Part shown: one piece after another, positions 1,012-31,612 of the stretch
Layout: each line of letters opens with the position of its first letter
Numbering within the stretch: the stretch's first letter is position 1
Assembly (NCBI GenBank): GCA_002104905.1
Contig: MCFE01000033.1
Coordinates: 62,001 to 126,000, forward strand
Reading direction: 5' to 3'
Length of the DNA: 64,000 bases
From: Basidiobolus meristosporus CBS 931.73
Taxonomy: Eukaryota > Fungi > Basidiobolomycota
Made by a program: the position numbers and the translations under genes
Notes under the pieces: model-generated
Databases searched by the model: none
Seen by the model: only the letters and a program-made list of their open reading frames with translations
Told to the model about the DNA's origin: nothing

Positions 1012-3581
1012 TCAAAGATCCAAATCAGAGCCGTCTCCCAGCCCAACCTCTTTTTCGAATTCGGACTGCTTCATCTTGCCCTTCTTCACCTTCTTGGCCA
1101 ATCTTTCTTCGCGTTGCAGACTTTCCCACTCGTCATCATCGTCCTCGTCGTCACTTGCATCGCGCTTCTTGCCTAGCTGTATGGCTGCCTCAATGGCCTT
1201 TTGGTTGAGATATTCTCGTTTTTTATCCTTCTTCAAGCGACGTTCAGCACGGCGGTCCTTGGCTTCTTGCTTGTCCGACCAAGCTTGCTTTTTCTTGGGT
1301 GCCCTGGGCTCACGTTCTGGACTGAAACAGAAGCCGGATTCATTCAATTAATCTGCCAGAACATGAAACGGCTTGACGAAGCTTACCGATTTTCACGCTC
1401 CTTCAATTTCAAAAGTCTCTGTTTCTCCTTGGCTTTGTCAAGATACTTGAGCTCATCAAGCTAAGGTAGCCAGGAAAGCGGGGTTAGATCGCGATGATTA
1501 GAGGGGAAAGCTGACCGGTACGTACATTAACATCGGGTGGAGAAAAGTCTACTTGACGATCTTTGAGCTCGGGCATTTTAGGGAGCTGTAGAATAAACAT
1601 ATGAGTACGCAGTTTGAGACATGCTAAGAACGGCCTCCCGCAACTAACCCTCAGCAAGCCATAGCCTCTAGCAGCCTTTCCAAAGTCGAAATCCTTGACA
1701 CGGAAGATATAAGTGGCCTCGTGTTTGGAGTAGGATCTTGCAAAGGAAACGAACGCTTTCATGCTCTTGAGAATAAAGGTCAATCATGTAATAGCTTCTG
1801 CGTTGAGGAAGTACATATTACTTTGTCATAGATATCCCTATCAGAGGCCACAATCTGCTGAACTTCCTCTAATATCTTGTCGTTTTCGGGATCTTCGAGA
1901 TCTTCGCTTGAGCCTGAAAGGGGGCTCAGATCTGATTGCAGATATGGGTATCTACGAAGGGGGATCTTTCGGATGTGGAGGAAGTCTTATTGGCGGTTAG
2001 CTTATAACCCTTGGTAGTAGAAGCAATAACGCTGATACTAACCTACATAGGTTTCTTCTCTGCCACAGTTCAAGAACACTATGGCGCGGCCTTCTCTGCC
2101 CGCACGAGCCGTTCTTCCGCAGCGATGTGCGAAGACTTTGGGATCTTGTGGTGGATCAAATTGCACCACAACATCAACATCAGGGATATCAAGTCCACGC
2201 GAGGCAACATCTGTGCATACCAAGATTGCTCCCTCGCCCTCAGGGATACCAACAAACGAGTTGTATGTTGCTATCAAGCGCTGTTGTATTAGAGATACGG
2301 CAGGGCGTCACACTTGTTGAAATGACATACCGTTTCTTCTTTTGGTTTCCATTTGACCATGAAGGGAAAAGATCTTGAATTCCGATAGAGCGGAGTGTTT
2401 GGAAAGTACCTATTGGAGGAGATGTTGATGAGCCGAGGCGACTTTCATTGGACTCTACGTCGGTCCACTCACTTTGAAGAAGTAATCAACACACGCGCAG
2501 GTGCTAAAGTAGACGATGTACTTCTTGTTGCTCTCGCTTTGTAATGTGCGAACAAGCTGTCCTAGTTTTTGGTCAGGATTGCAGACGATGAAGCCGTTTT
2601 CTAAACTGATGGAGGAATTCAGCCACTGTATGAACAAGTAATAGTAGTTGTTGCCTTGACTAACGTTGCGGGGGTTCTTTGTTCTTCGTGAGACTTGAGA
2701 TCTTCCACTTTGACGACAACACGCACCGGGTTACGAAGACCTGCTCTAACCAATTCCGATAGGGCGTCTGTCATAGTGGCTGAGAAAAGACCAGTACGTC
2801 TTTGCTTGGGTAAAGCACCAATGATGTTGGTCAGGGAGTTGGAGAAGCCCATATCTAAGAGTCTGGAAATAATGAAATTCGATGTTATTAGGGGTTGACC
2901 AAGTTCGAACCCTGTAAAGAGTACCTATCAGCTTCATCCAGCACCAGAACTTCCAGTTCTTTGGTATTAATCAACTTTGCTCCTCCTCTTCCGGTCAACA
3001 AATCCTCAAGTCTTCCAGGGGTTCCAATCAAAATATCTGGTCCTTCTTCCTTGAAATGTTTGATGTCATCGGCAATAGTTGCCTCACCACCGATGTATAA
3101 GGCATGCTTAAGGTGTTGGAAGGAGCCCTTTAAAAATATGTCCATGACTTCATAAATTTGCTTGGCAAGCTCTCTCGTGGGAGTGACAATGACTGCGCCA
3201 ATCTGGTTTTTTGCCAAGGGGTCCTCTCTTCTAAGTAAAATCTGCAACACTGGAATAACAAACGCGAGTGTCTTGCCGGAACCTGTTACGGCCTAAGACA
3301 TCGAAGCGAGGTATTAGTATATAGCGAAAAGCTGGTCGCTGCCGTGATGGGAAGTGGCGAACCTCAACGACTACGTCCTTGTTTTTTAAGAATAACGGGA
3401 TCGTCGCTGCTTGAACCGGGGTCATGTTGGTGAAGCCCAAATTCTGAACCGTCTCTAAACTAGAAAAACCAAATCTCAACGACAGTTCTATGTAGAGACG
3501 CCTTTATATTACTGACATTTCCGGTCTAAGTTCGACTTGGGTGTTACCCCAAGTACCAGCATATGAGGGTACAGCTGACAT
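1012..3581 (-). CDS. SPB4: ATP-dependent rRNA helicase Spb4/DDX55 (DEAD-box), multi-exon
   Basis: ATG at 3581 ([11 protein letters not shown]...), Q motif [63 protein letters not shown]4217-like [19 protein letters not shown]-rich tail; TGA at 1012-1014. Confidence 0.95.
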
Positions 3582-3823
3582 TAGAAGTTGATGAACAATA
3601 CAACGTAGTCACAACTAGAAGCTAGGTAGAATATAGGAAATCGACTATCGCTCTTCATTATTCTTTTTTTTTCGAGATTCATGTCTACAGCGGTCAAAAA
3701 AATTCCAATGTGACCGGTGTAGTGATGTTTTACATGTAATGGATATTCTTAAAAAATGTGGGGACAAAATATTTCTTTTCTAATCCCAAATTTTGTGGTG
3801 GTCCGGATGATTGGAGGGGCGAA

Positions 3824-3831
3824 TATAAATA
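3824..3831 (+). promoter_or_regulatory. TATA box of snoRNA copy 2 (equivalent at 788-795 on minus for copy 1)
   Basis: TATAAATA conserved in both duplicated copies, immediately upstream of the first hairpin. Confidence 0.5.
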
Positions 3832-3839
3832 CATCGGAG

Positions 3840-4137
3840 CGATCCACTTCCTCCCTCAGTTGATGTGGATCGTGGAGCTTGCTCTGCAAGTTGCCCTTTC
3901 AATCGGTACTACGAAGCACCCAGACGAATCCTTCGCGAATCGTCGCCCTTGTGGTGTATAATTCTATCCGGCACATCATTGAGAGAACTCGTCTGTTGTC
4001 TTGAGCGAAACCCCTTGGGGTGGAGTTCGACGATGGAATGAGAGCACCGTATATTCTATGTCTTTCCGTAGGTCTTTTGACCAGGTGACTATGTCACCTT
4101 GACGGTTGGGAATAACCATGCGGTGTATATACCCACA
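3840..4137 (+). ncRNA. Probable snR30/U17 (SNORA73)-family H/ACA snoRNA, copy 2
   Basis: H box AGAGCA 4041-4046, m1-like ATATTCTA 4051-4058, m2-like AACCAT 4114-4119, lower stem CCGT/GCGG, upper stems GGTC/GACC and GGTGAC/GTCACC, ATA 4127-4129 or ACA 4135-4137. Same layout as the U17 3' hairpin (canonical m1 AUAUUCCUA, m2 AAACCAU). Confidence 0.7.
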
Positions 4138-4479
4138 TTGTATGTACCAATATACATTCACATCTTCAAATACAAACAACAACCAAAATGAAATTCCAAA
4201 CCGAAGTTCAAGTATAATCAAAGCTAACTGGCTGTATATATAATTTCGATGGCCTTTTTTTTTCATATGACTACGCCATCTTGACAGTTGAGAATTACTA
4301 TGCGGTGTTTAAACCAATATACATACTACAATATCAACGGCCACTTAATGCTTGAAATTCGTCACAGTTTAAGATCAACCCGTGAGTAACAACGAAATGT
4401 AAGGTGGCTTAGCTAGTGCATATGATGTACGAAACTTATTTAAACCCGCTGTATTGGTGTTACTAATCATACCAACATC

Positions 4480-10459: not shown

Positions 10460-11768
10460 TCATGCTGATGGACTTTGGATGTAACTCATAAACAATGGGA
10501 TGCCTCGGTTGGTGCTGATGATGAAATAAAACGGCCTGTTGCATTCGAAATGAAACGGGCGTCCTAGAATCATTGCTGACCTGGTGAGGATAACTGCGGT
10601 GGCGGCACTAGCCTTGGAGCCCGACTACGGTGATTTATCAAAGTATGAGTCTTGGTGAATGGGCGAAAGGTTGATCCAATCCACTTACCTCGTCCACCTC
10701 TATTCTGCACTTGTGCAGAATGCTATCTACAGCCAAGGATCCATCAGTCAGCTCCCCCAGATTGGCTTCCCTGGCGTCGAACACTCTCCTGATACCCGCA
10801 TCCTTTAATGCCTGGCTGAGATCTACCTGGCTCTCCAAATCAAACTTCGGCAAAATCACTGTTCCACGGGCTTTCATCTTTCTCTCCAAAAAGACGTGCT
10901 TCCATTCCTCTGGGTTCATCATGGTACTTGCCTTCTGGAAATCAACTGCCTCTTTGGGAAGTACAATGGTGGCCAGAAAGCGGTAATCCTTGTAGGGCAT
11001 ATGCAACACCTGGTAGGACTCTCTTTCTGCATACTCCCATGTTTTCCCCTCAATGGTCATCATGCTAGCATCTAGCTGCTTTCCCAGAGGTGTGGAAAAG
11101 GGTGCGCTCTTCGTATCATCCGGACCAAATGGGTGAAGCCAGCGGCCATGGAAGTAAACAGAGTTGATAAGCATGATCACCGTATTCGAGAAGCTTTGCT
11201 CAGGGCTGAAAAATTCCTTTAGGTGCCCTTTGGTTTTCTTCTCTATCCAAGCGTTCACCCTTCTACCATCCTCGGGGGGTGGAAAGGCTTCGGCGGAAAA
11301 CAGGGCACTCACTTTTTCGAGGTACGATTGGTGGATCCCCTCTCCCCAGATTGAGTTCGCCACCTCGAGGTCGGCGAGCCTATCGCTCGGAATCTCCACG
11401 CTTCCGTCTCTGTTCAATAGCTCATTCAGGAGGTCTTGTGCAGCGTTGTTGACGAGATCGAGGCACTCGGCAGAGTTATTTACGAGGGAAGGGAGTTTGA
11501 AAGCATCTAGGATCTCCTCTCGGCTTTGGGTCTCTTTTGAAGTGCCATTGACTAGCAGTAGTAAGGCGAAGGTTACCGAAGCCGGGGAAAACAAGACGTT
11601 CTGATCTTTTGTCTGGAGCAAAGAGAGGGACAGGCTTTCGGATATACTCCGTATAGCGCTGTACAGCAACTCCTCGTGCTTCTCTAGTTCGATGAAGGTG
11701 GGGTCGTGTTCGCCTTGAAACATTCCGTTGATTTTGTAAGCTGTGAGAGACGCAAATCGGATGGGCAA
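10460..11768 (-). CDS. Serpin (serine protease inhibitor family), 2 exons
   Basis: NVLFSPASV, VANSIW, VNAWIEKKTKG, LINSVYFHGRWLHPF, LPKF; intron 10625-10688 (GTAAGT...TAG) joins VDE to hinge/RCL SGSKASAATAVILTRSAM and serpin signature FECNRPFYFII; TGA at 10460-10462. Start could be 11768 or 11723. Confidence 0.92.
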
Positions 11769-21515: not shown

Positions 21516-21852
21516 GTTTCAAACAAATAAACACTCCTGTTCATTAATAAGTAATGGAACGACAGGCCAATGAAGCCTTCCTAGGTGAATCAATCCTTGG
21601 GTTACTAGATGGGAGCCTATGCACTTGGTCGATATCAATTCCTGCATTAAGAGCTCCCAATAAGAACCAAGCGCAAATCCTTTTTCCAGCCAAGAAATCG
21701 CGGGCACTATGGTACCATTGGCTTACTGAGAATAGATGCCGAAATGGTTGGTTCTTTGCTATGACAGCTTTATGAACTCATAACGCATCGTTCTCACTAT
21801 AAATTCTGGCTTCTGCTGACCCTTCAAAAACCAGTTCAGAACACAAACCAAT

Positions 21853-23532
21853 ATGAAGTCTTTCTGTGGATTAGCCTTATCGATCCTTTTGTACACCTCG
21901 GCAGCACTGGCTGAATGCACCAATGGTGAGTTCAGATGTTCCGTTGACAATCCCAGCCAGATTGATCAATGCTCCAACAATGATTGGATCCATATCACTT
22001 GTGGCGAAGGGACCGTCTGTAGCATGAAGGACAGCAAGACACCTACTTGTGTACTCAAGGGGAACGAAGATGAAGATGGAAATAATCATCATGAACTGGC
22101 AAAAGGCAGTCCTCCCAACCAACAGGAAGACAGCGGAAGTGACGATGCAGGTGAAGATGAGGAAGACGACGAAGATAATGATACGCACAAAGAAATGGCT
22201 AAAAGCAACCCTCACAGCAGTGATAAAGTAATCCACAAACGCGAGGATGACGATGGTGATGAAGATGAAGATGAGGAAGACAACGAGGATGGTGATACAC
22301 ATAAGGGACTAGCTAAAAGCGACCCTTCTGATGATAAAGTAATCAACAAGCGTGAGGTGGGGGAGGATGAAGATGTTGCCGATGAGGAAGAAGACGATGG
22401 CGAGGAAGACGACGGGGATGATGGTACACACAAAGAGTTGGCAAAAGACAATCATTCTGATCACGGTGAAGATAAAGCAACCCGCAAACGCGAGGAGAGT
22501 GATGATGAAGGCGAGGATGATGAAGATGAAGATGGTGAAGATGATGATACACACAAAGAAATGGCGCAAAGTAACCCTTCTAATCACGGCGACGAGAAAG
22601 TAATCAGCAAGCGTGAGGAGGGTGATGATGATGCTAAAGACGAGGAAAATGATGATGACGATGGTGGTGATGGTAAGGATGATGAGGGCGAAGATGATGA
22701 TACACACAAAGAGTTGGCCAAAGGCAATACTTCCGATCACCGTGGTGATAAAGGAATCAACAAGCGTGAAGAGGATGAAGAGGATGATGATAATGATGGT
22801 AGTGAGGACGAAGAGGATGATACACACAAGGAGTTGGCCAAAGGCAATACTTCCGATCCCCAAGGTGGCAAAGTAATCAATGAGCGTGAAGAGGAAGAGG
22901 ATGATGAAGATAGTGAAGAAGAAGAAGAAGATGGTGAGGACAACGGTGACAACACTCACATAGAGTTGGCTAAAGGCAATACTTCCGATCGCCGAGGTGA
23001 TAAAGTAATTAACAAGCGTGAGGAGGATGAAAATGAAGACGAGGGCGAGGAAGAGGACGAAGATGATGGTGAGGATGATGATACACACAAGGAGTTGGTC
23101 AAAGACAATACGTCCGATCCCCGAGGTGATAAAGTAATCAACAAGCGTGAGGAGAAGGACGATGAAGAAGATGAAGATGAGGACGACAACGATGAAGATG
23201 ATGAAGATGGGGACGACAACGATGATGATGATGAAGACGAGGACGACGACGACGACGAAGAAGAAGATGATGATGATGATGAGGACGACGACGAAGACAG
23301 TTGGGATGATGGGGGTAGAGATAAGATGCTTGCAAAAAATGGAAACGGAAGCCGCAACAATGATGATAAAAGCCAGGCTGATCCCTTATCAAGTGGACCA
23401 AAAACACCAACTGCCTCTCCAAGTTCTACTGCAGGTGGAGCCCATCCCTCACCCAAGGCTTCCGGTATACCGGAGCCTTCGGCACACAACAGTAAGGGTT
23501 TGCGACGCCGCTTCCTGTTAAGACGTTTATAA
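21853..23532 (+). CDS. Secreted CBM19-like domain + KR-delimited acidic repeat protein (Kex2-processed repeat protein candidate), 559 aa, intronless
   Basis: Signal peptide MKSFCGLALSILLYTSAALA; Cys domain CTNGEFRC...QCSNNDWIHITCGEGTVC; 8 full repeat units THKE(L/M)AKxNxSDxxxDKVINKR (7 end in KR, one in ER) separated by poly-D/E; TATAAA at 21798-21803. Confidence 0.85.
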   Translation: MKSFCGLALSILLYTSAALAECTNGEFRCSVDNPSQIDQCSNNDWIHITCGEGTVCSMKDSKTPTCVLKGNEDEDGNNHHELAKGSPPNQQEDSGSDDAGEDEEDDEDNDTHKEMAKSNPHSSDKVIHKREDDDGDEDEDEEDNEDGDTHKGLAKSDPSDDKVINKREVGEDEDVADEEEDDGEEDDGDDGTHKELAKDNHSDHGEDKATRKREESDDEGEDDEDEDGEDDDTHKEMAQSNPSNHGDEKVISKREEGDDDAKDEENDDDDGGDGKDDEGEDDDTHKELAKGNTSDHRGDKGINKREEDEEDDDNDGSEDEEDDTHKELAKGNTSDPQGGKVINEREEEEDDEDSEEEEEDGEDNGDNTHIELAKGNTSDRRGDKVINKREEDENEDEGEEEDEDDGEDDDTHKELVKDNTSDPRGDKVINKREEKDDEEDEDEDDNDEDDEDGDDNDDDDEDEDDDDDEEEDDDDDEDDDEDSWDDGGRDKMLAKNGNGSRNNDDKSQADPLSSGPKTPTASPSSTAGGAHPSPKASGIPEPSAHNSKGLRRRFLLRRL

Positions 23533-26929: not shown

Positions 26930-29900
26930 TGTTGTAAGAGTCTTGGAGATATTGGAAGTGATTTGGAGAACAAGTAGATTATGTGTTTTTCACTTAATGA
27001 TTTATTGAATGTAAAAGTGGTATTTATACTTTTACCTGGTCTTGGCATTACAAACACGTAGAATAGGCTAAGGAAGGTCCCAAGAACATGTGTGCAAAGT
27101 TTGGGGCTGTTTGGACAACTTTGAGAATTTTCATGTTCTGGGTACCTGGTATTTTGGTGAAAATATTCTAAGTAAATCCCGACAAGGAATTTGGTCAGTA
27201 TTCTCTAGGATTTGAAGGTGATGAGCTAAGTGACTAAGTTAGGTGAATATTTAGGTGGAAATACAAATTTTTACAACACTCCCACTCAGCTAAATGTTCA
27301 TACTGACTAGTCCTAATTTTGACCTAAGATATTCAAACTTGTCTCTAGCTAATGGTTTGGTAAATATGTCCGCAATCATTTCATCTGTAGAACAGTAAGC
27401 TAAGCTAACTAAGTTATTCTCTATAGCTTCACGTATGAAATGATGTCGAATATCTATGTGCTTGGTTCTAGCATGAAAAGTTGGATTTCTACCTAGTTGT
27501 ATACATCCTTGATTATCTTGAAATAAAGTAATAGGCGTTTTTTGACATAGGCCTAAATCTGCAAAGAGCTTTGTTAACCATATTGCTTCTTTTGTAGCTT
27601 CACAGGCTGCCATATACTCTGCCTCTGTAGTAGAAAGTGCTACGGTTGGTTGCTTTCTTGGATTCCATGAAATTGCTCCTTTACAGTAAAGAAAGGTGTA
27701 TCCTGTGGTGGATCTTCTGTCTTCTAAATTTCGTCCTCAATCAGCATCAGAGTATCCCACAAGATCCTGTTCTGAATCCTTATAAGTGTATCTTAAGCAG
27801 ATATCAGCAGTTCCTTTTAGGTATCTAAAAATCCACTTAACTGCTGCAATATGATCAGATCCATAATTCTGATTATGTTGGCTGACAACTCCCACTGAAT
27901 ATGAGATATCTGGACGTGTTCCAAGCATGATATACATCAGACTGCCGACCATAGATTGATAAGGAAAGTCAGGGCTTTCAGATGGCACCAAGCTCTCTTG
28001 ATTTGGTTGAGTTTTGACCAAGTTAAGGTTTGTCTCCATTGGGGTAGCTGCCGGTTTACAGTCTTCCATTTTGTACTTCTTTAGTATATCTTGAATATAC
28101 TTGGATTGGCTTAGGGTAAAAGTCTGGGTACTTCTGTCTATGGAGAACTTAATCCCTAAGTAGTAACTGAGTTCTCCTAGATTGGACATCTTGAACTCCT
28201 TAGATAGGCTGGATTTAGTCTCTTCCAATGTTTCTAGGTTATTAGTGGCTATAATAAGATCATCCACATATAGAGCTAATAGAACTGGATTTGCTCTATC
28301 TGGCTTATAGTATATACTATAGTCAGCATTACTCCTTTTGAAACTCAAAGATTCCAAATAAGAATCTATCTTGCAATTCCAGGCTCTTGGTGATTGTTTG
28401 AGACCATATAGTGACTTTTCAAGCTTGCAGACCAAATGGGGGTTATCTTGGTCAACAAACCCATCAGGTTGGTCCATATACATGTCCTCATCAAGTTCTC
28501 CATTCAAAAATGCAGTTTTTACATCCATTTGATGAATGAAAAACTTATATATGGCTGCAACAGCCAATATTGATCTGATGGAATTAAACTTGGCTACCGG
28601 TGCAAAGGTCTCAGTATAGTCAAGTCCTTTTGTTTGAGAGTATCCTTTGGCTACAAGTCTTGCTTTGTATCTTTCAACCGTACCATCAGCCTTGTATTTT
28701 GTCTTGAAGACCCATCTGCATGCAATTGATTTTTGGTTGATTGGTAATTTGACTAAGTCCCAAGTTTGATTTTCCATCAGGGCCTGATATTCCTCAGTCA
28801 TTGCAGATCTCCAAAACTTTGTCTGAGGGCTATTTAGGGCCTCTTTTACAGTCTGGGGTTCATCAATATGGACTGAATAGGCATAGGCTAAGTTTGTACC
28901 CTCATTAAAATAGTAATTTGGGCTATTTCTTGTCCGATTTGATCTCCAGGCATTTGATACTGGAATGATCACTTCTGGGATATTCCTGGGCACTGATTCT
29001 GGCTGAACCACAGTTGTAGAGTCCTCTGGAGTGAAAAAATTTTCATTGTTTTGCTCTGATTCAATCCTGACAATTGGTGGACTTGAGATCAAATTTTTGT
29101 CATCATCTGATGTCATTTTTTGTAAACATTTTGAATTTTCATCAAACAACACATCCCTGGACTTGATAAGCTTCTTTGCTTTGGTATTGTAGAGTCTGTA
29201 TGCCTTACTCTCATTGCAGTAGCCCAAAAATATGCATTTTACACTTTTTGGCTCAAATTTTGACTGATTTCTAGCCAGTTTTTTGGCATATGCTGTGCAC
29301 CCAAATATTCTTAGATGTTCTGCACTTGGTCTGTATCCATACCATGCTTCAAATGGAGTAGAATCATGAAGTATTCTGTTATAACTCCTATTTTTAAGGT
29401 ATACAGCAGTGGCAACTGATTCCGCCCAAAAATCATAGGATAATTTTTGATCATGGATCATAGATCTTGCCATATCAATTATTGATCTGTTAGCTTGTTC
29501 TGCTACTCCATTTTGCTGTGGGGAGTATGGTACAGTAGTCTCTTGCTTTATCCCATGAATTTTGCAGAAGTGGATGAAGAGTTTTGGGGTATATTCTCCA
29601 CCATTGTCAGAGCGTATTTTCTTCATTTTTTCACCAGTTTCTCTCTCCACCATGGCTTTAAACTCCCTGAACTTAGACAGAGTTTCTTCCTTTCTCTCCA
29701 TGAAGTAGACCCATGTGTATCTTGTATAATCATCAATAAAAGAGATTAAATACTTCATCCCACCTAAGGATAAATTTTGCATAGGTCCACACAGATCTGA
29801 GTGAATTAGATCTAATTTTTTCTTAGTTTTGATTAACCCAGAGCTCTTGAGCAGTTGTCTGGATTGTTTCCCATATATGCAGGCTTCACAGTGCTCCAAA

Positions 29901-31612
29901 TTAGCTGGGGGATCAATTTTTACTCCAGAAATTAGCTGATCTTTGATCATTTTGCGCAAATAATCAAAATTGATGTGCCCAAATCTCCTGTGCCAAAGCA
30001 TTGGTGTTTCTTCATTTAAGTTACTTATATTGGCTTCCAGATATGATGCAATATAAGTCAACTTACATAGATTCTGATCTCTGATGCCCAAAGCAATATG
30101 AGCACCATTTTGATCAGTGATCCTCCATCCAGAATTGTCAAAACTGAAACTGAGTCCTTCTGCTGTGGCCTTGCTTACAGAGAGTAGGTTCTTGGCTATT
30201 TCTGGTACATAGAGTACTTCTTTAAAGGTCAGTGTATGGCTTCCTTCACTACTTCTAAGGTTTACTTGGATAGTTTCTTCTCCCACTGCATCAAGTGTTC
30301 TATTGTCACCCATGAAAACCTTCTTAATTGGAATTTGTTGATATTGGGTAAAAAGTTCTTTTTGGTGTGTAAAGTGTTGAGAAGCTCCAGAGTCAATATA
30401 CCACGTCTGAGAATCCTTGTTTGTGGTCATATTTAGTGCAGATATGAATAGTCTATCTTCAGTTGTTGCAGCATTTCCATATTCAGGCTTCTTTTGCTGA
30501 TAATCTCTCTTTTTGAAACACCGGTCTGATGTGTGTCCTTTCCTTTTGCAGTAGTTGCAAAATAGGTTGCTGTTGCCTTTGTAGGGTCTTGGGTACCTCC
30601 TTTGTTGGTTATCATTGCTTATTAAAGCATTTTCTTCTTCCTTCTTATTGGCGCTTGATTTTCTTAATTCTTCATCCAGGAGCCTTCCATATACGTAGTT
30701 TAAGGTCAAATCTTCAGTTCTGGACTCTAGGGCTGATACAAGGCCCTGAAACTTGTCTGTCAGGCTATTCAGGATGGTAACTATCACATCCTCATCAGTA
30801 GTTGGTACACCCACAGATTCCATCTCATCTACCAGCAGGGTAATTCTGTTAATTAGATTTTTCATTTCTTCTCCTGGCAGCATCTTTGTAGTAAAGAATT
30901 TTCTTCTCAGATACATTTTCTTGGCAGCTGAACATGACTGGTAGGTGTCTTCTAATGCCTTCCAGGCATTCTTTGCCGTTTTTGCTCTTGAGCATTGAAT
31001 TAGCAATTTGTCCTTGACATTAAGGCAAATGCAGTTAAAGGCACTTTGTTCTTTCTTCTGGTACTTTAAGGCTTCCTCTCCCACGTTTTTAGGAGGGCAT
31101 TCTTCTCCCATGACAATATCCCAAAGGCCTCTTTCTTGCAGCATCATCTTCATCTTCACCTTCCACACTTGGTAGTTAGATCCATCCAACTTTTCAGCAG
31201 AGGGAAAAATTCCAGTAATAGCAGTAGTAGACATTGCAGAGAGTGACAGCTTGGGGCTCTTAACCTGTTGTAAGAGTCTTGGAGATATTGGAAGTGATTT
31301 GGAGAACAAGTAGATTATGTGTTTTCACTTAATGATTTATTGAATGTAAAAGTGGTATTTATACTTTTACCTGGTCTTGGCATTACAAACACGTAGAATA
31401 GGTTAAGGAAGGTCCCAAGAACATGTGTGCAAAGTTTGGGGCTGTTTGGACAACTTTGAGAATTTTCATGTTCTGGGTACCTGGTATTTTGGTGAAAATA
31501 TTCTAAGTAAATCCCAACAAGGAATTTGGTCAGTATTCTCTAGGATTTGAAGGTGATGATCTAAGTGACCAAGTTAGGTGAATATTTAGGTGGAAATACG
31601 AATTTTACAACA
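26930..31612 (-). mobile_element. Full-length Ty1/copia LTR retrotransposon (family 1), one premature stop
   Basis: LTRs 31266-31612 and 26930-27278 (TG...CA, 5 substitutions + 2 indels), TSD GTCTT both sides, PBS GGTTAAGAGCCC after the 5' LTR, PPT GAGTGGGAG before the 3' LTR. Confidence 0.97.
27290..31234 (-). pseudogene. copia gag-pol (gag, Zn knuckle, protease, integrase, RT, RNase H)
   Basis: CNYCKRKGHTSDRC, WYIDSGASQH, LWHRRFGH, HSDLCGP/FIDD/SDNGGEY, KARLVAKGYSQ, LYVDDL. Open until YSDAD* (TGA at 27737-27739 where W is expected); RNase H continues in frame (RRSTTGY...STTEAEYMA...TKHIDIRHHF) to 27290. Confidence 0.93.

Follow-up and report, generated by a model that had tools for sequence, protein, structure and literature searches.

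The 64,000-nucleotide stretch of Basidiobolus meristosporus CBS 931.73 analysed here (NCBI assembly GCA_002104905.1, contig MCFE01000033.1, positions 62,001 to 126,000 of the forward strand; hereafter the window) carries a gene for a secreted protein that joins a small cysteine-rich head to a long acidic tail, in which eight repeat units end in Lys-Arg (KR) or, once, in Glu-Arg (ER). The gene is real and the observation is confirmed: translation of the window gives an intact, intron-less open reading frame (ORF) of 559 codons plus a stop, with no internal stop, and NCBI places an identical gene call (559 aa, single exon) on the same contig, where the locus spans positions 83853-85532. An earlier reading made by a model from the letters alone, referred to here as the original prediction, had described a secreted protein with a signal peptide, eight units (seven KR, one ER) and a basic tail, and all of these elements are borne out by the translation, the public gene call and inspection. 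What it made of them is supported in part. Two other readings of the same DNA were set aside. GTAAGG at 23492-23497, 12 codons before the stop, would as a splice donor remove or replace the basic tail, but a 3' intron was rejected as a working model because the public gene call is intron-less and relatives carry matching tails. An antisense ORF of 259 aa (22309-23088) is a spurious by-product of GAx codon repeats.

Features of the repeat gene; positions are those of the window
Feature	Position	Strand	Residues	Remark
TATAAAT box	21798..21804	+		about 50 bp 5' of the start codon; consensus match only, putative promoter element
Whole coding sequence	21853..23532	+		ORF translation and NCBI gene call
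Signal peptide	21853..21912	+	1-20	predicted cut after Ala-Leu-Ala; judged by inspection
Six-Cys head, divergent CBM19/CBM14-type chitin-binding-like knot	21913..22056	+	21-68	homology and predicted fold
Acidic linker with degenerate unit 0 (NHHELAK), without dibasic site	22057..22122	+		residues 69-110 precede the first core
Eight-unit array	22123..23148	+	91-432	per unit, an 18-29 aa Asp/Glu/Gly/Asn spacer and a 19-22 aa conserved core
KR codons, first five	22237-22242, 22348-22353, 22486-22491, 22609-22614, 22762-22767	+
ER codons	22882-22887	+		single AAG to GAG change
KR codons, last two	23014-23019, 23143-23148	+
Near-pure Asp/Glu block	23149..23301	+	433-483	trinucleotide-type repeats
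Degenerate terminal unit (RDKMLAK...), then Ser/Pro-rich stretch	23302..23490	+	within 484-559
Basic and hydrophobic C-terminal tail ending RRRFLLRRL	23491..23529	+		C-terminus GLRRRFLLRRL

The signal peptide has Lys2, a hydrophobic core (residues 5-20 average 1.8 on the Kyte-Doolittle scale) and small residues at -3 and -1, and it holds the only Tyr of the whole protein. Asp and Glu together make up 39.7% of residues, with a calculated pI of 4.05 for the mature protein. The last 20 residues are Arg-rich with a mean hydropathy of -1.1, which is not the profile of a glycosylphosphatidylinositol (GPI) signal. There are seven N-x-S/T sequons, five within unit cores (NTS in units 5-8, NHS in unit 3) and two, NDT and NGS, outside them. 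A Pfam search with the whole protein gave no match.

Core starts, matched as THK(E/G)(L/M)(A/V)(K/Q), lie at residues 111, 149, 192, 233, 284, 324, 368 and 411, and the units end at residues 130, 167, 213, 254, 305, 345 (the ER), 389 and 432; the core consensus is T-H-K-E-(L/M)-A-K-x-(N/D)-...-D-K-V-I-N-K-R. Around the sites, P4 is Ile in seven of the eight units and P1' is Glu in all of them. The residues just before the dibasic site read V-I-N, with I-H, T-R or I-S in the units that deviate. Successive KR sites delimit pieces of 37, 46, 41, 51, 84 and 43 aa, of which the 84-aa piece spans the ER site and the shorter ones come to 35-49 aa once KR is trimmed, so that the size of about 45-55 aa first given for the released peptides does not hold. 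The count of eight stands for full units, but degenerate units also precede and follow the array.

Two short motifs within the cores may be recorded separately. R-G-D, the classic integrin-recognition motif, occurs in three of the eight (HRGDK, RRGDK and PRGDK in units 5, 7 and 8; residues 298-300, 381-383 and 424-426, within 22615-23148); composition predicts about 0.4 occurrences, but the three copies share descent and may be a coincidence. At the core starts (22177-23148) all eight units have the His, and the sequence reads D-T-H-K in four and D-T-H-I in a fifth. D-T-H-K is the amino-terminal Cu/Ni-binding (ATCUN) sequence of bovine serum albumin. Binding of that kind requires the chain to begin, with a free N-terminus, two residues ahead of the His; the predicted cuts at KR create no such end.

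The head and its Basidiobolus relatives

A phmmer/HMMER scan of 1.84 billion protein cluster representatives returned 23 matches to the window protein, most of them uninformative alignments of poly-Asp/Glu to residues 430-545. Four match the head: P0001 (B. meristosporus, two gene copies, 144 aa, E 1.8e-9), P0002 (B. ranarum, 168 aa, E 4.8e-7), P0003 (a Logan assembly protein of 251 aa with four tandem CBM_19 modules, E 6.3e-7) and P0015 (Smittium megazygosporum, 446 aa, E 4.3e-4). UniProt labels P0001 and P0015 as CBM19 domain proteins. Against the Pfam CBM_19 model P0003 scores 42.4 bits, P0001 20.1 bits (exactly the gathering cut-off) and P0002 17.9 bits, and P0003 matches CBM_14 as well. 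A further match, P0007, aligns to the repeats and was discarded as an array relative; it is a long unrelated repeat protein without acidic KR units.

The head is 30-43% identical to the family heads in an alignment of ten (A1), or about 46% identical to P0001 and P0002 by BLASTP, and in that alignment C4, G7, C11, C22, W27 (Trp45 of the protein), C32 and C38 do not vary and C48 is almost invariant. An AlphaFold (AF2) model built from alignment A1 is small and beta-rich (pLDDT 88.6); a single-sequence model of residues 1-132 was poor (pLDDT 51.6) and was not used. When the AF2 model was compared with 48,161 PDB representatives by VIA-align, seven of the best eight matches were chitin-binding CBM14-type domains (Z 4.2-5.7, covering 44-53 of 54 residues), namely those of Aplysia EHEP, Der p 23, two Avr4 proteins, Blo t 12, tachycitin and human chitotriosidase (CHIT1). 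The ESM Atlas gave weak leads for the head to CBM19/CBM1-like clusters, at 0.77-0.82.

Two results count against this assignment. The window protein itself has no match to CBM_19 (PF03427) at E up to 10 and falls short of the 20.1-bit cut-off, and the fold matches are moderate, with Z below 6; Foldseek places the same kinds of domain among its best matches but at E 0.15 or worse. No CBM19 structure was present among the fold-search matches for comparison. Membership in CBM19 is therefore indirect, running through significant homology to P0001-P0003 in place of a Pfam score of its own. In our reading the head is a divergent module of the CBM19/CBM14 type that likely binds chitin: the CBM19-like domain of the original prediction is supported by homology to P0001 and P0003 and by a CBM14-like predicted fold, while the direct HMMER check that had been suggested gave no CBM_19 match.

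The same head recurs across Basidiobolus in a multi-gene family. Clusters L002 and L003 (the two P0001 loci; L002:5902-11170) and L004 (the P0002 locus; 1552-4229) each hold three to four tandem genes of one design, a signal peptide followed by a six-Cys CBM19-type head and a disordered acidic tail, and the window protein has this design too. The family tails include long Gly-Asp-Asp repeats and Asp/Glu/Asn-rich stretches; one Gly-Asp-Asp repeat in L002 (7906-8787) runs for about 150-170 residues. The window gene differs from these mini-proteins in being dispersed where they form tandem clusters (by regex scan, the 64-kb window holds no other head), in encoding 559 aa where they have 144-325, and in carrying an eight-unit array where they have at most one KR.

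The origin of the array may be sought at the other end of these relatives. In P0001 and P0002 the last few residues are hydrophobic and come directly after a dibasic site (MLKR-MMEL and VRKR-MMDFS), much like the RRR-FLLRRL of the window protein, and the repeat units align with the C-terminal module of both proteins as well as with the last, degenerate unit of the window protein. The C-terminal dibasic site, common to P0001 of B. meristosporus and P0002 of B. ranarum, aligns with the unit ends. Tandem duplication of an ancestral acidic run, together with a module ending in a dibasic site, is thus the probable origin of the array, a reading that is only suggestive because the alignment is short and of low complexity.

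Neither the HMMER scan of 1.84 billion representatives nor the ESM Atlas yielded a protein with the same array, and an annotated array orthologue seems to be lacking in B. ranarum, whose proteins were among those searched. P0001 and its minus-strand neighbour are syntenic between the two Basidiobolus species. The window gene is flanked by a gene for a PH-domain protein and, on the other strand, by a PNP_UDP_1 phosphorylase gene; the neighbour of P0002 in B. ranarum is not PNP_UDP_1, which makes P0002 an orthologue of P0001 and not of the window gene. A word-index protein search with residues 1-215 gave 8000 candidates swamped by Asp/Glu words, none of them significant, one with residues 1-80 gave no match, and P0001 as query retrieved only itself; these outcomes carry little weight, since the method needs shared 5-residue words and the collection searched does not include the window protein. 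A full-text literature search on Basidiobolus found no paper describing the window protein or the head-plus-acidic-tail family. The window gene is best read as a lineage-specific member of this family, with the KR-punctuated array as its special feature. The original prediction had suggested looking for conserved KR spacing in relatives; a second genomic copy, described below, keeps all the sites, but P0001 and P0002 have a single C-terminal KR and no array was found elsewhere.

Proposed cleavage of the array and its alternatives

KEPs (Kex2-processed repeat proteins) have been catalogued computationally by Le Marquer 2019 (PMC6339444) and Umemura 2020 (PMC7329392), the latter defining them by a signal peptide and at least three repeats of 8-100 aa between KR, KK, RK or RR, and finding B. 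meristosporus CBS 931.73 to be the KEP-richest fungus surveyed, with 43. The window protein shows a signal peptide on inspection and pieces of 37-84 aa between seven KR sites, and by these sequence criteria it formally belongs to the class. The original prediction had not recognised the architecture from a characterised protein, a statement that calls for some qualification: KEPs are a catalogued class in which this very strain is reported to be the richest (PMC7329392), and the head-plus-acidic-tail design is that of a multi-gene family, whereas the KR-punctuated array does remain special.

Several lines of evidence suggest that the sites are maintained. Segment 71-490 holds seven KR dipeptides against 1.08 expected, with a maximum of six in 10,000 shuffles, but this excess is weak on its own because the units are copies of one another, and codon analysis is the better test. 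Over 22 codons, a small sample, the eight cores have a mean pS of 0.54 and a mean pN of 0.18, and pairwise dN/dS, where computable, lies at 0.12-0.47. Synonymous difference is near saturation between units 1-4 and the others, while units 5-8 are younger or homogenised. The codons within the KR sites vary, with AAA or AAG for Lys and CGC or CGT for Arg. Because pS far exceeds pN and the Lys and Arg codons vary synonymously, KR appears to be held by selection beyond recent copying, and the cores and KR sites look selected.

A second copy of the locus, on a 20.9-kb contig of the same assembly (MCFE01000996.1; repeat gene at L006:7075-8766, minus strand), holds PNP_UDP_1, the repeat gene and the PH-domain gene. 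Its flanks are 98% identical over 7.9 kb, with an identical PNP protein; either a haplotig or a recent segmental duplication could account for it. The second gene has 563 codons and is 98.2% identical, and none of the eight units, the seven KR sites or the ER is missing from it. Length differences between the two genes all fall inside acidic runs, most of them in the 433-483 block. The ten amino-acid changes spare T-H and K-R; one falls at P3 (His128 to Gln), and another turns THKGLAK back into the consensus THKELAK. In a separate observation, the two locus copies diverge sharply 5' of position 3678, with 88-92% identity and rearrangement.

Kex2 favours Lys-Arg sites that have an aliphatic residue at P4, and an acidic one at P1' is accepted, KR-Glu-Ala of yeast alpha-factor being an example; the aliphatic P4 preference was reportedly described by Rockwell and Fuller in 1998. 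The repeat region is certainly disordered. Because the site context is favourable and the region disordered, we lean towards the view that the tail has become a KEP array cleaved by kexin in the Golgi, and the first suggestion of a Kex2-type array gains from the formal KEP assignment and from sites that look selected in the pS/pN comparison and are all kept in the second copy.

On this proposal of kexin cleavage, the signal peptide would be removed after Ala20, the head would fold in the endoplasmic reticulum as a three-disulfide knot, and the N-x-S/T sequons may be glycosylated. Kexin in the Golgi would then cleave up to seven sites, between (V)-I-N-K-R and the Glu that follows, and KR would be trimmed off by a carboxypeptidase of the Kex1 type. 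The predicted head product (residues 21-128, 108 aa, net charge about -19) would comprise the chitin-binding-type module and a 60-aa acidic stub, resembling the short members of the family in design and roughly in size (for example P0001, 144 aa). The free peptides would number five of 35-49 aa with net charges of -15 to -18 and one of 82 aa at -30, each ending in the conserved His-containing core, and the last product would be a 127-aa poly-Asp/Glu piece with the basic tail (net charge -39). The most likely job of the head piece would be to coat chitin with fixed negative charge, whereas the released peptides may act as soluble binders for Ca2+, for transition metals held by His and carboxylates, or for cationic peptides of hosts and competitors. 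These roles, like the neutralisation of chitosan that the original prediction had raised, are hypothetical.

Four points tell against cleavage. The acidic tails of the other family members examined hold no KR, only P0001 and P0002 having one, and such tails fit an ancestral protein whose polyanion was tethered and uncut. In one unit the dibasic site is gone. The two gene copies differ at ten non-synonymous and three synonymous positions, which gives no sign of constraint, although the differences are too few to judge. Lastly, something other than cleavage could account for the conservation of the core motif.

The first two of these points also speak for the alternative that fares best, namely that the protein stays whole, its head docking on chitin and its 490-residue acidic, glycosylated tail standing as a charged brush on the surface of hyphae or spores for hydration, cation exchange, anti-adhesion or shielding, with KR serving as part of a recognition motif or being only partly cut. 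Here the KR-free acidic tails that share the head in L002 and L004, the tolerance of ER in one unit, the N-glycan sequons 13 residues upstream of four sites, and the precedent of Rsp3, a characterised non-processed repetitive protein that decorates the wall (PMC5923269), all fit. A disordered stretch of KR sites with aliphatic P4 and acidic P1' is nevertheless a near-ideal kexin substrate that would transit the Golgi, KR has been kept through near-saturated synonymous divergence, and the protein fits the formal definition of a KEP; we regard an uncut brush as possible but on balance unlikely.

We find it quite improbable that the array is instead a precursor of signalling peptides, in which the 20-aa core (T-H-K-E-L-A-K ... 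D-K-V-I-N) would be the active part, pheromone-like or host-directed, and the acidic runs spacers or pro-regions for solubility. Selection on the core, while the spacers vary from 18 to 29 aa and change by slippage, is what such a precursor would show, as is the usual logic of KEPs (PMC6339444, PMC7329392), and the R-G-D of three units would suit a host-directed role. No second cleavage site separates spacer from core, however, leaving the core joined to its acidic run; no relative found elsewhere has the core; and the family context of head plus acidic tail points to charge as the common function.

It is very improbable that the ORF is a non-functional, low-complexity annotation artefact in a purine-rich repeat, as the missing Pfam match and the overlapping antisense ORF might suggest, given the signal peptide, the confidently folding six-Cys domain homologous to named proteins, core pN well below pS, two intact copies and a TATA box at -50.

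A ustiloxin-type precursor of peptides made by the ribosome and then modified after translation (RiPPs) was also considered and ruled out, since the units have no Tyr, which is mandatory for DUF3328-type cyclisation (Umemura, PMC7329392), and no DUF3328 or other peptide-tailoring gene lies among the window ORFs of at least 200 aa that were scanned. The original prediction had likewise judged that this did not look like a classic RiPP cluster.

Likeness to known systems and the gene neighbourhood

With the yeast alpha-factor precursor and Ustilago Rep1 and Hum3, all KEPs, the window protein shares a signal peptide and at least three tandem KR-bounded units, and with alpha-factor also an acidic residue after the KR site. 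Hum3, too, joins a folded functional domain, a hydrophobin, to an array of repeats with Kex2 sites. What sets the window protein apart from known KEPs is its units of 37-51 aa, about half Asp/Glu, with net charges of -15 to -18 and no Tyr, Trp or Cys, together with the N-terminal CBM19-type module. That module resembles CBM19 (PF03427, the chitin-binding module of the yeast chitinase Cts1) and the CBM14/peritrophin-A/tachycitin fold in its six-Cys spacing, its invariant Gly and Trp and its predicted small beta-rich knot; it is unlike CBM19 in scoring below the Pfam threshold and in not being joined to a chitinase. To the Basidiobolus mini-proteins the window protein is tied by the shared signal peptide, six-Cys head and disordered acidic tail, and to P0001 and P0002 in addition by the dibasic-plus-hydrophobic C-terminus.

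Two more distant systems offer partial parallels. Rsp3 of Ustilago maydis is a secreted protein with a Cys-rich region and long, length-polymorphic repeats that sticks to the fungus's own hyphae and shields them (PMC5923269). The window protein likewise combines secretion, a Cys-rich region and a long repeat domain, and its two copies also vary in length, but Rsp3 is predicted to escape processing, its repeats are different and it lacks a CBM19-type head. In mollusc nacre, the secreted precursor Pif is cut at RMKR into Pif97, which is chitin-binding (CBM14), and Pif80, which is aragonite-binding (PMC11291548). The likeness is one of design only, a single precursor with a dibasic cut, predicted in the case of the window protein, between a chitin-binding-type part and another part. 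Pif80 is acidic. Pif is an animal protein with a single cut in place of an array and with VWA and other domains, and nothing suggests that Basidiobolus mineralises.

A bolder form of the cleavage proposal would be a fungal Pif-like design, in which a chitin-docked acidic piece and polyanionic, His-bearing peptides (three with R-G-D) formed a new class of kexin-made 'polyanion decoys', soaking up cationic host-defence peptides or metals in the gut of amphibians or reptiles or in infected tissue, or engaging host integrins; we consider it doubtful. Amphibians and reptiles carry Basidiobolus in the gut, and the fungus is also an opportunistic pathogen; secreted cation-binding or RGD-bearing peptides could, hypothetically, bear on its dealings with hosts.

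The architecture is unusual, as far as sequence can tell, but the KEP class is catalogued, the family appears lineage-specific and every functional step is one that we infer. KEPs have been catalogued by the thousands and few have a known product or role. With a recognisable chitin-binding-type module, an array predicted to yield extreme polyanions and uncut paralogues for comparison, the window protein would make a clean test case. It raises the questions of whether kexin turns a wall-tethered polyanion into a soluble one, what the peptides bind, and how an array arises from a single C-terminal module.

Among the other large ORFs of the window (at least 200 aa) are a serpin, a fragment of a Cid1-type poly(A) polymerase (PAP) and a copia-type retrotransposon. 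The serpin ORF (10638-11768, minus strand, 376 aa) matches the Serpin domain strongly (PF00079, E 4e-60), and such proteins are uncommon among fungi. The Ty1/copia polyprotein ORF (27737-31309, minus strand, 1190 aa) looks intact, with gag, integrase and RVT_2 domains, and marks the onset of a stretch of lower GC content (about 0.37-0.40 from 26 kb onward).

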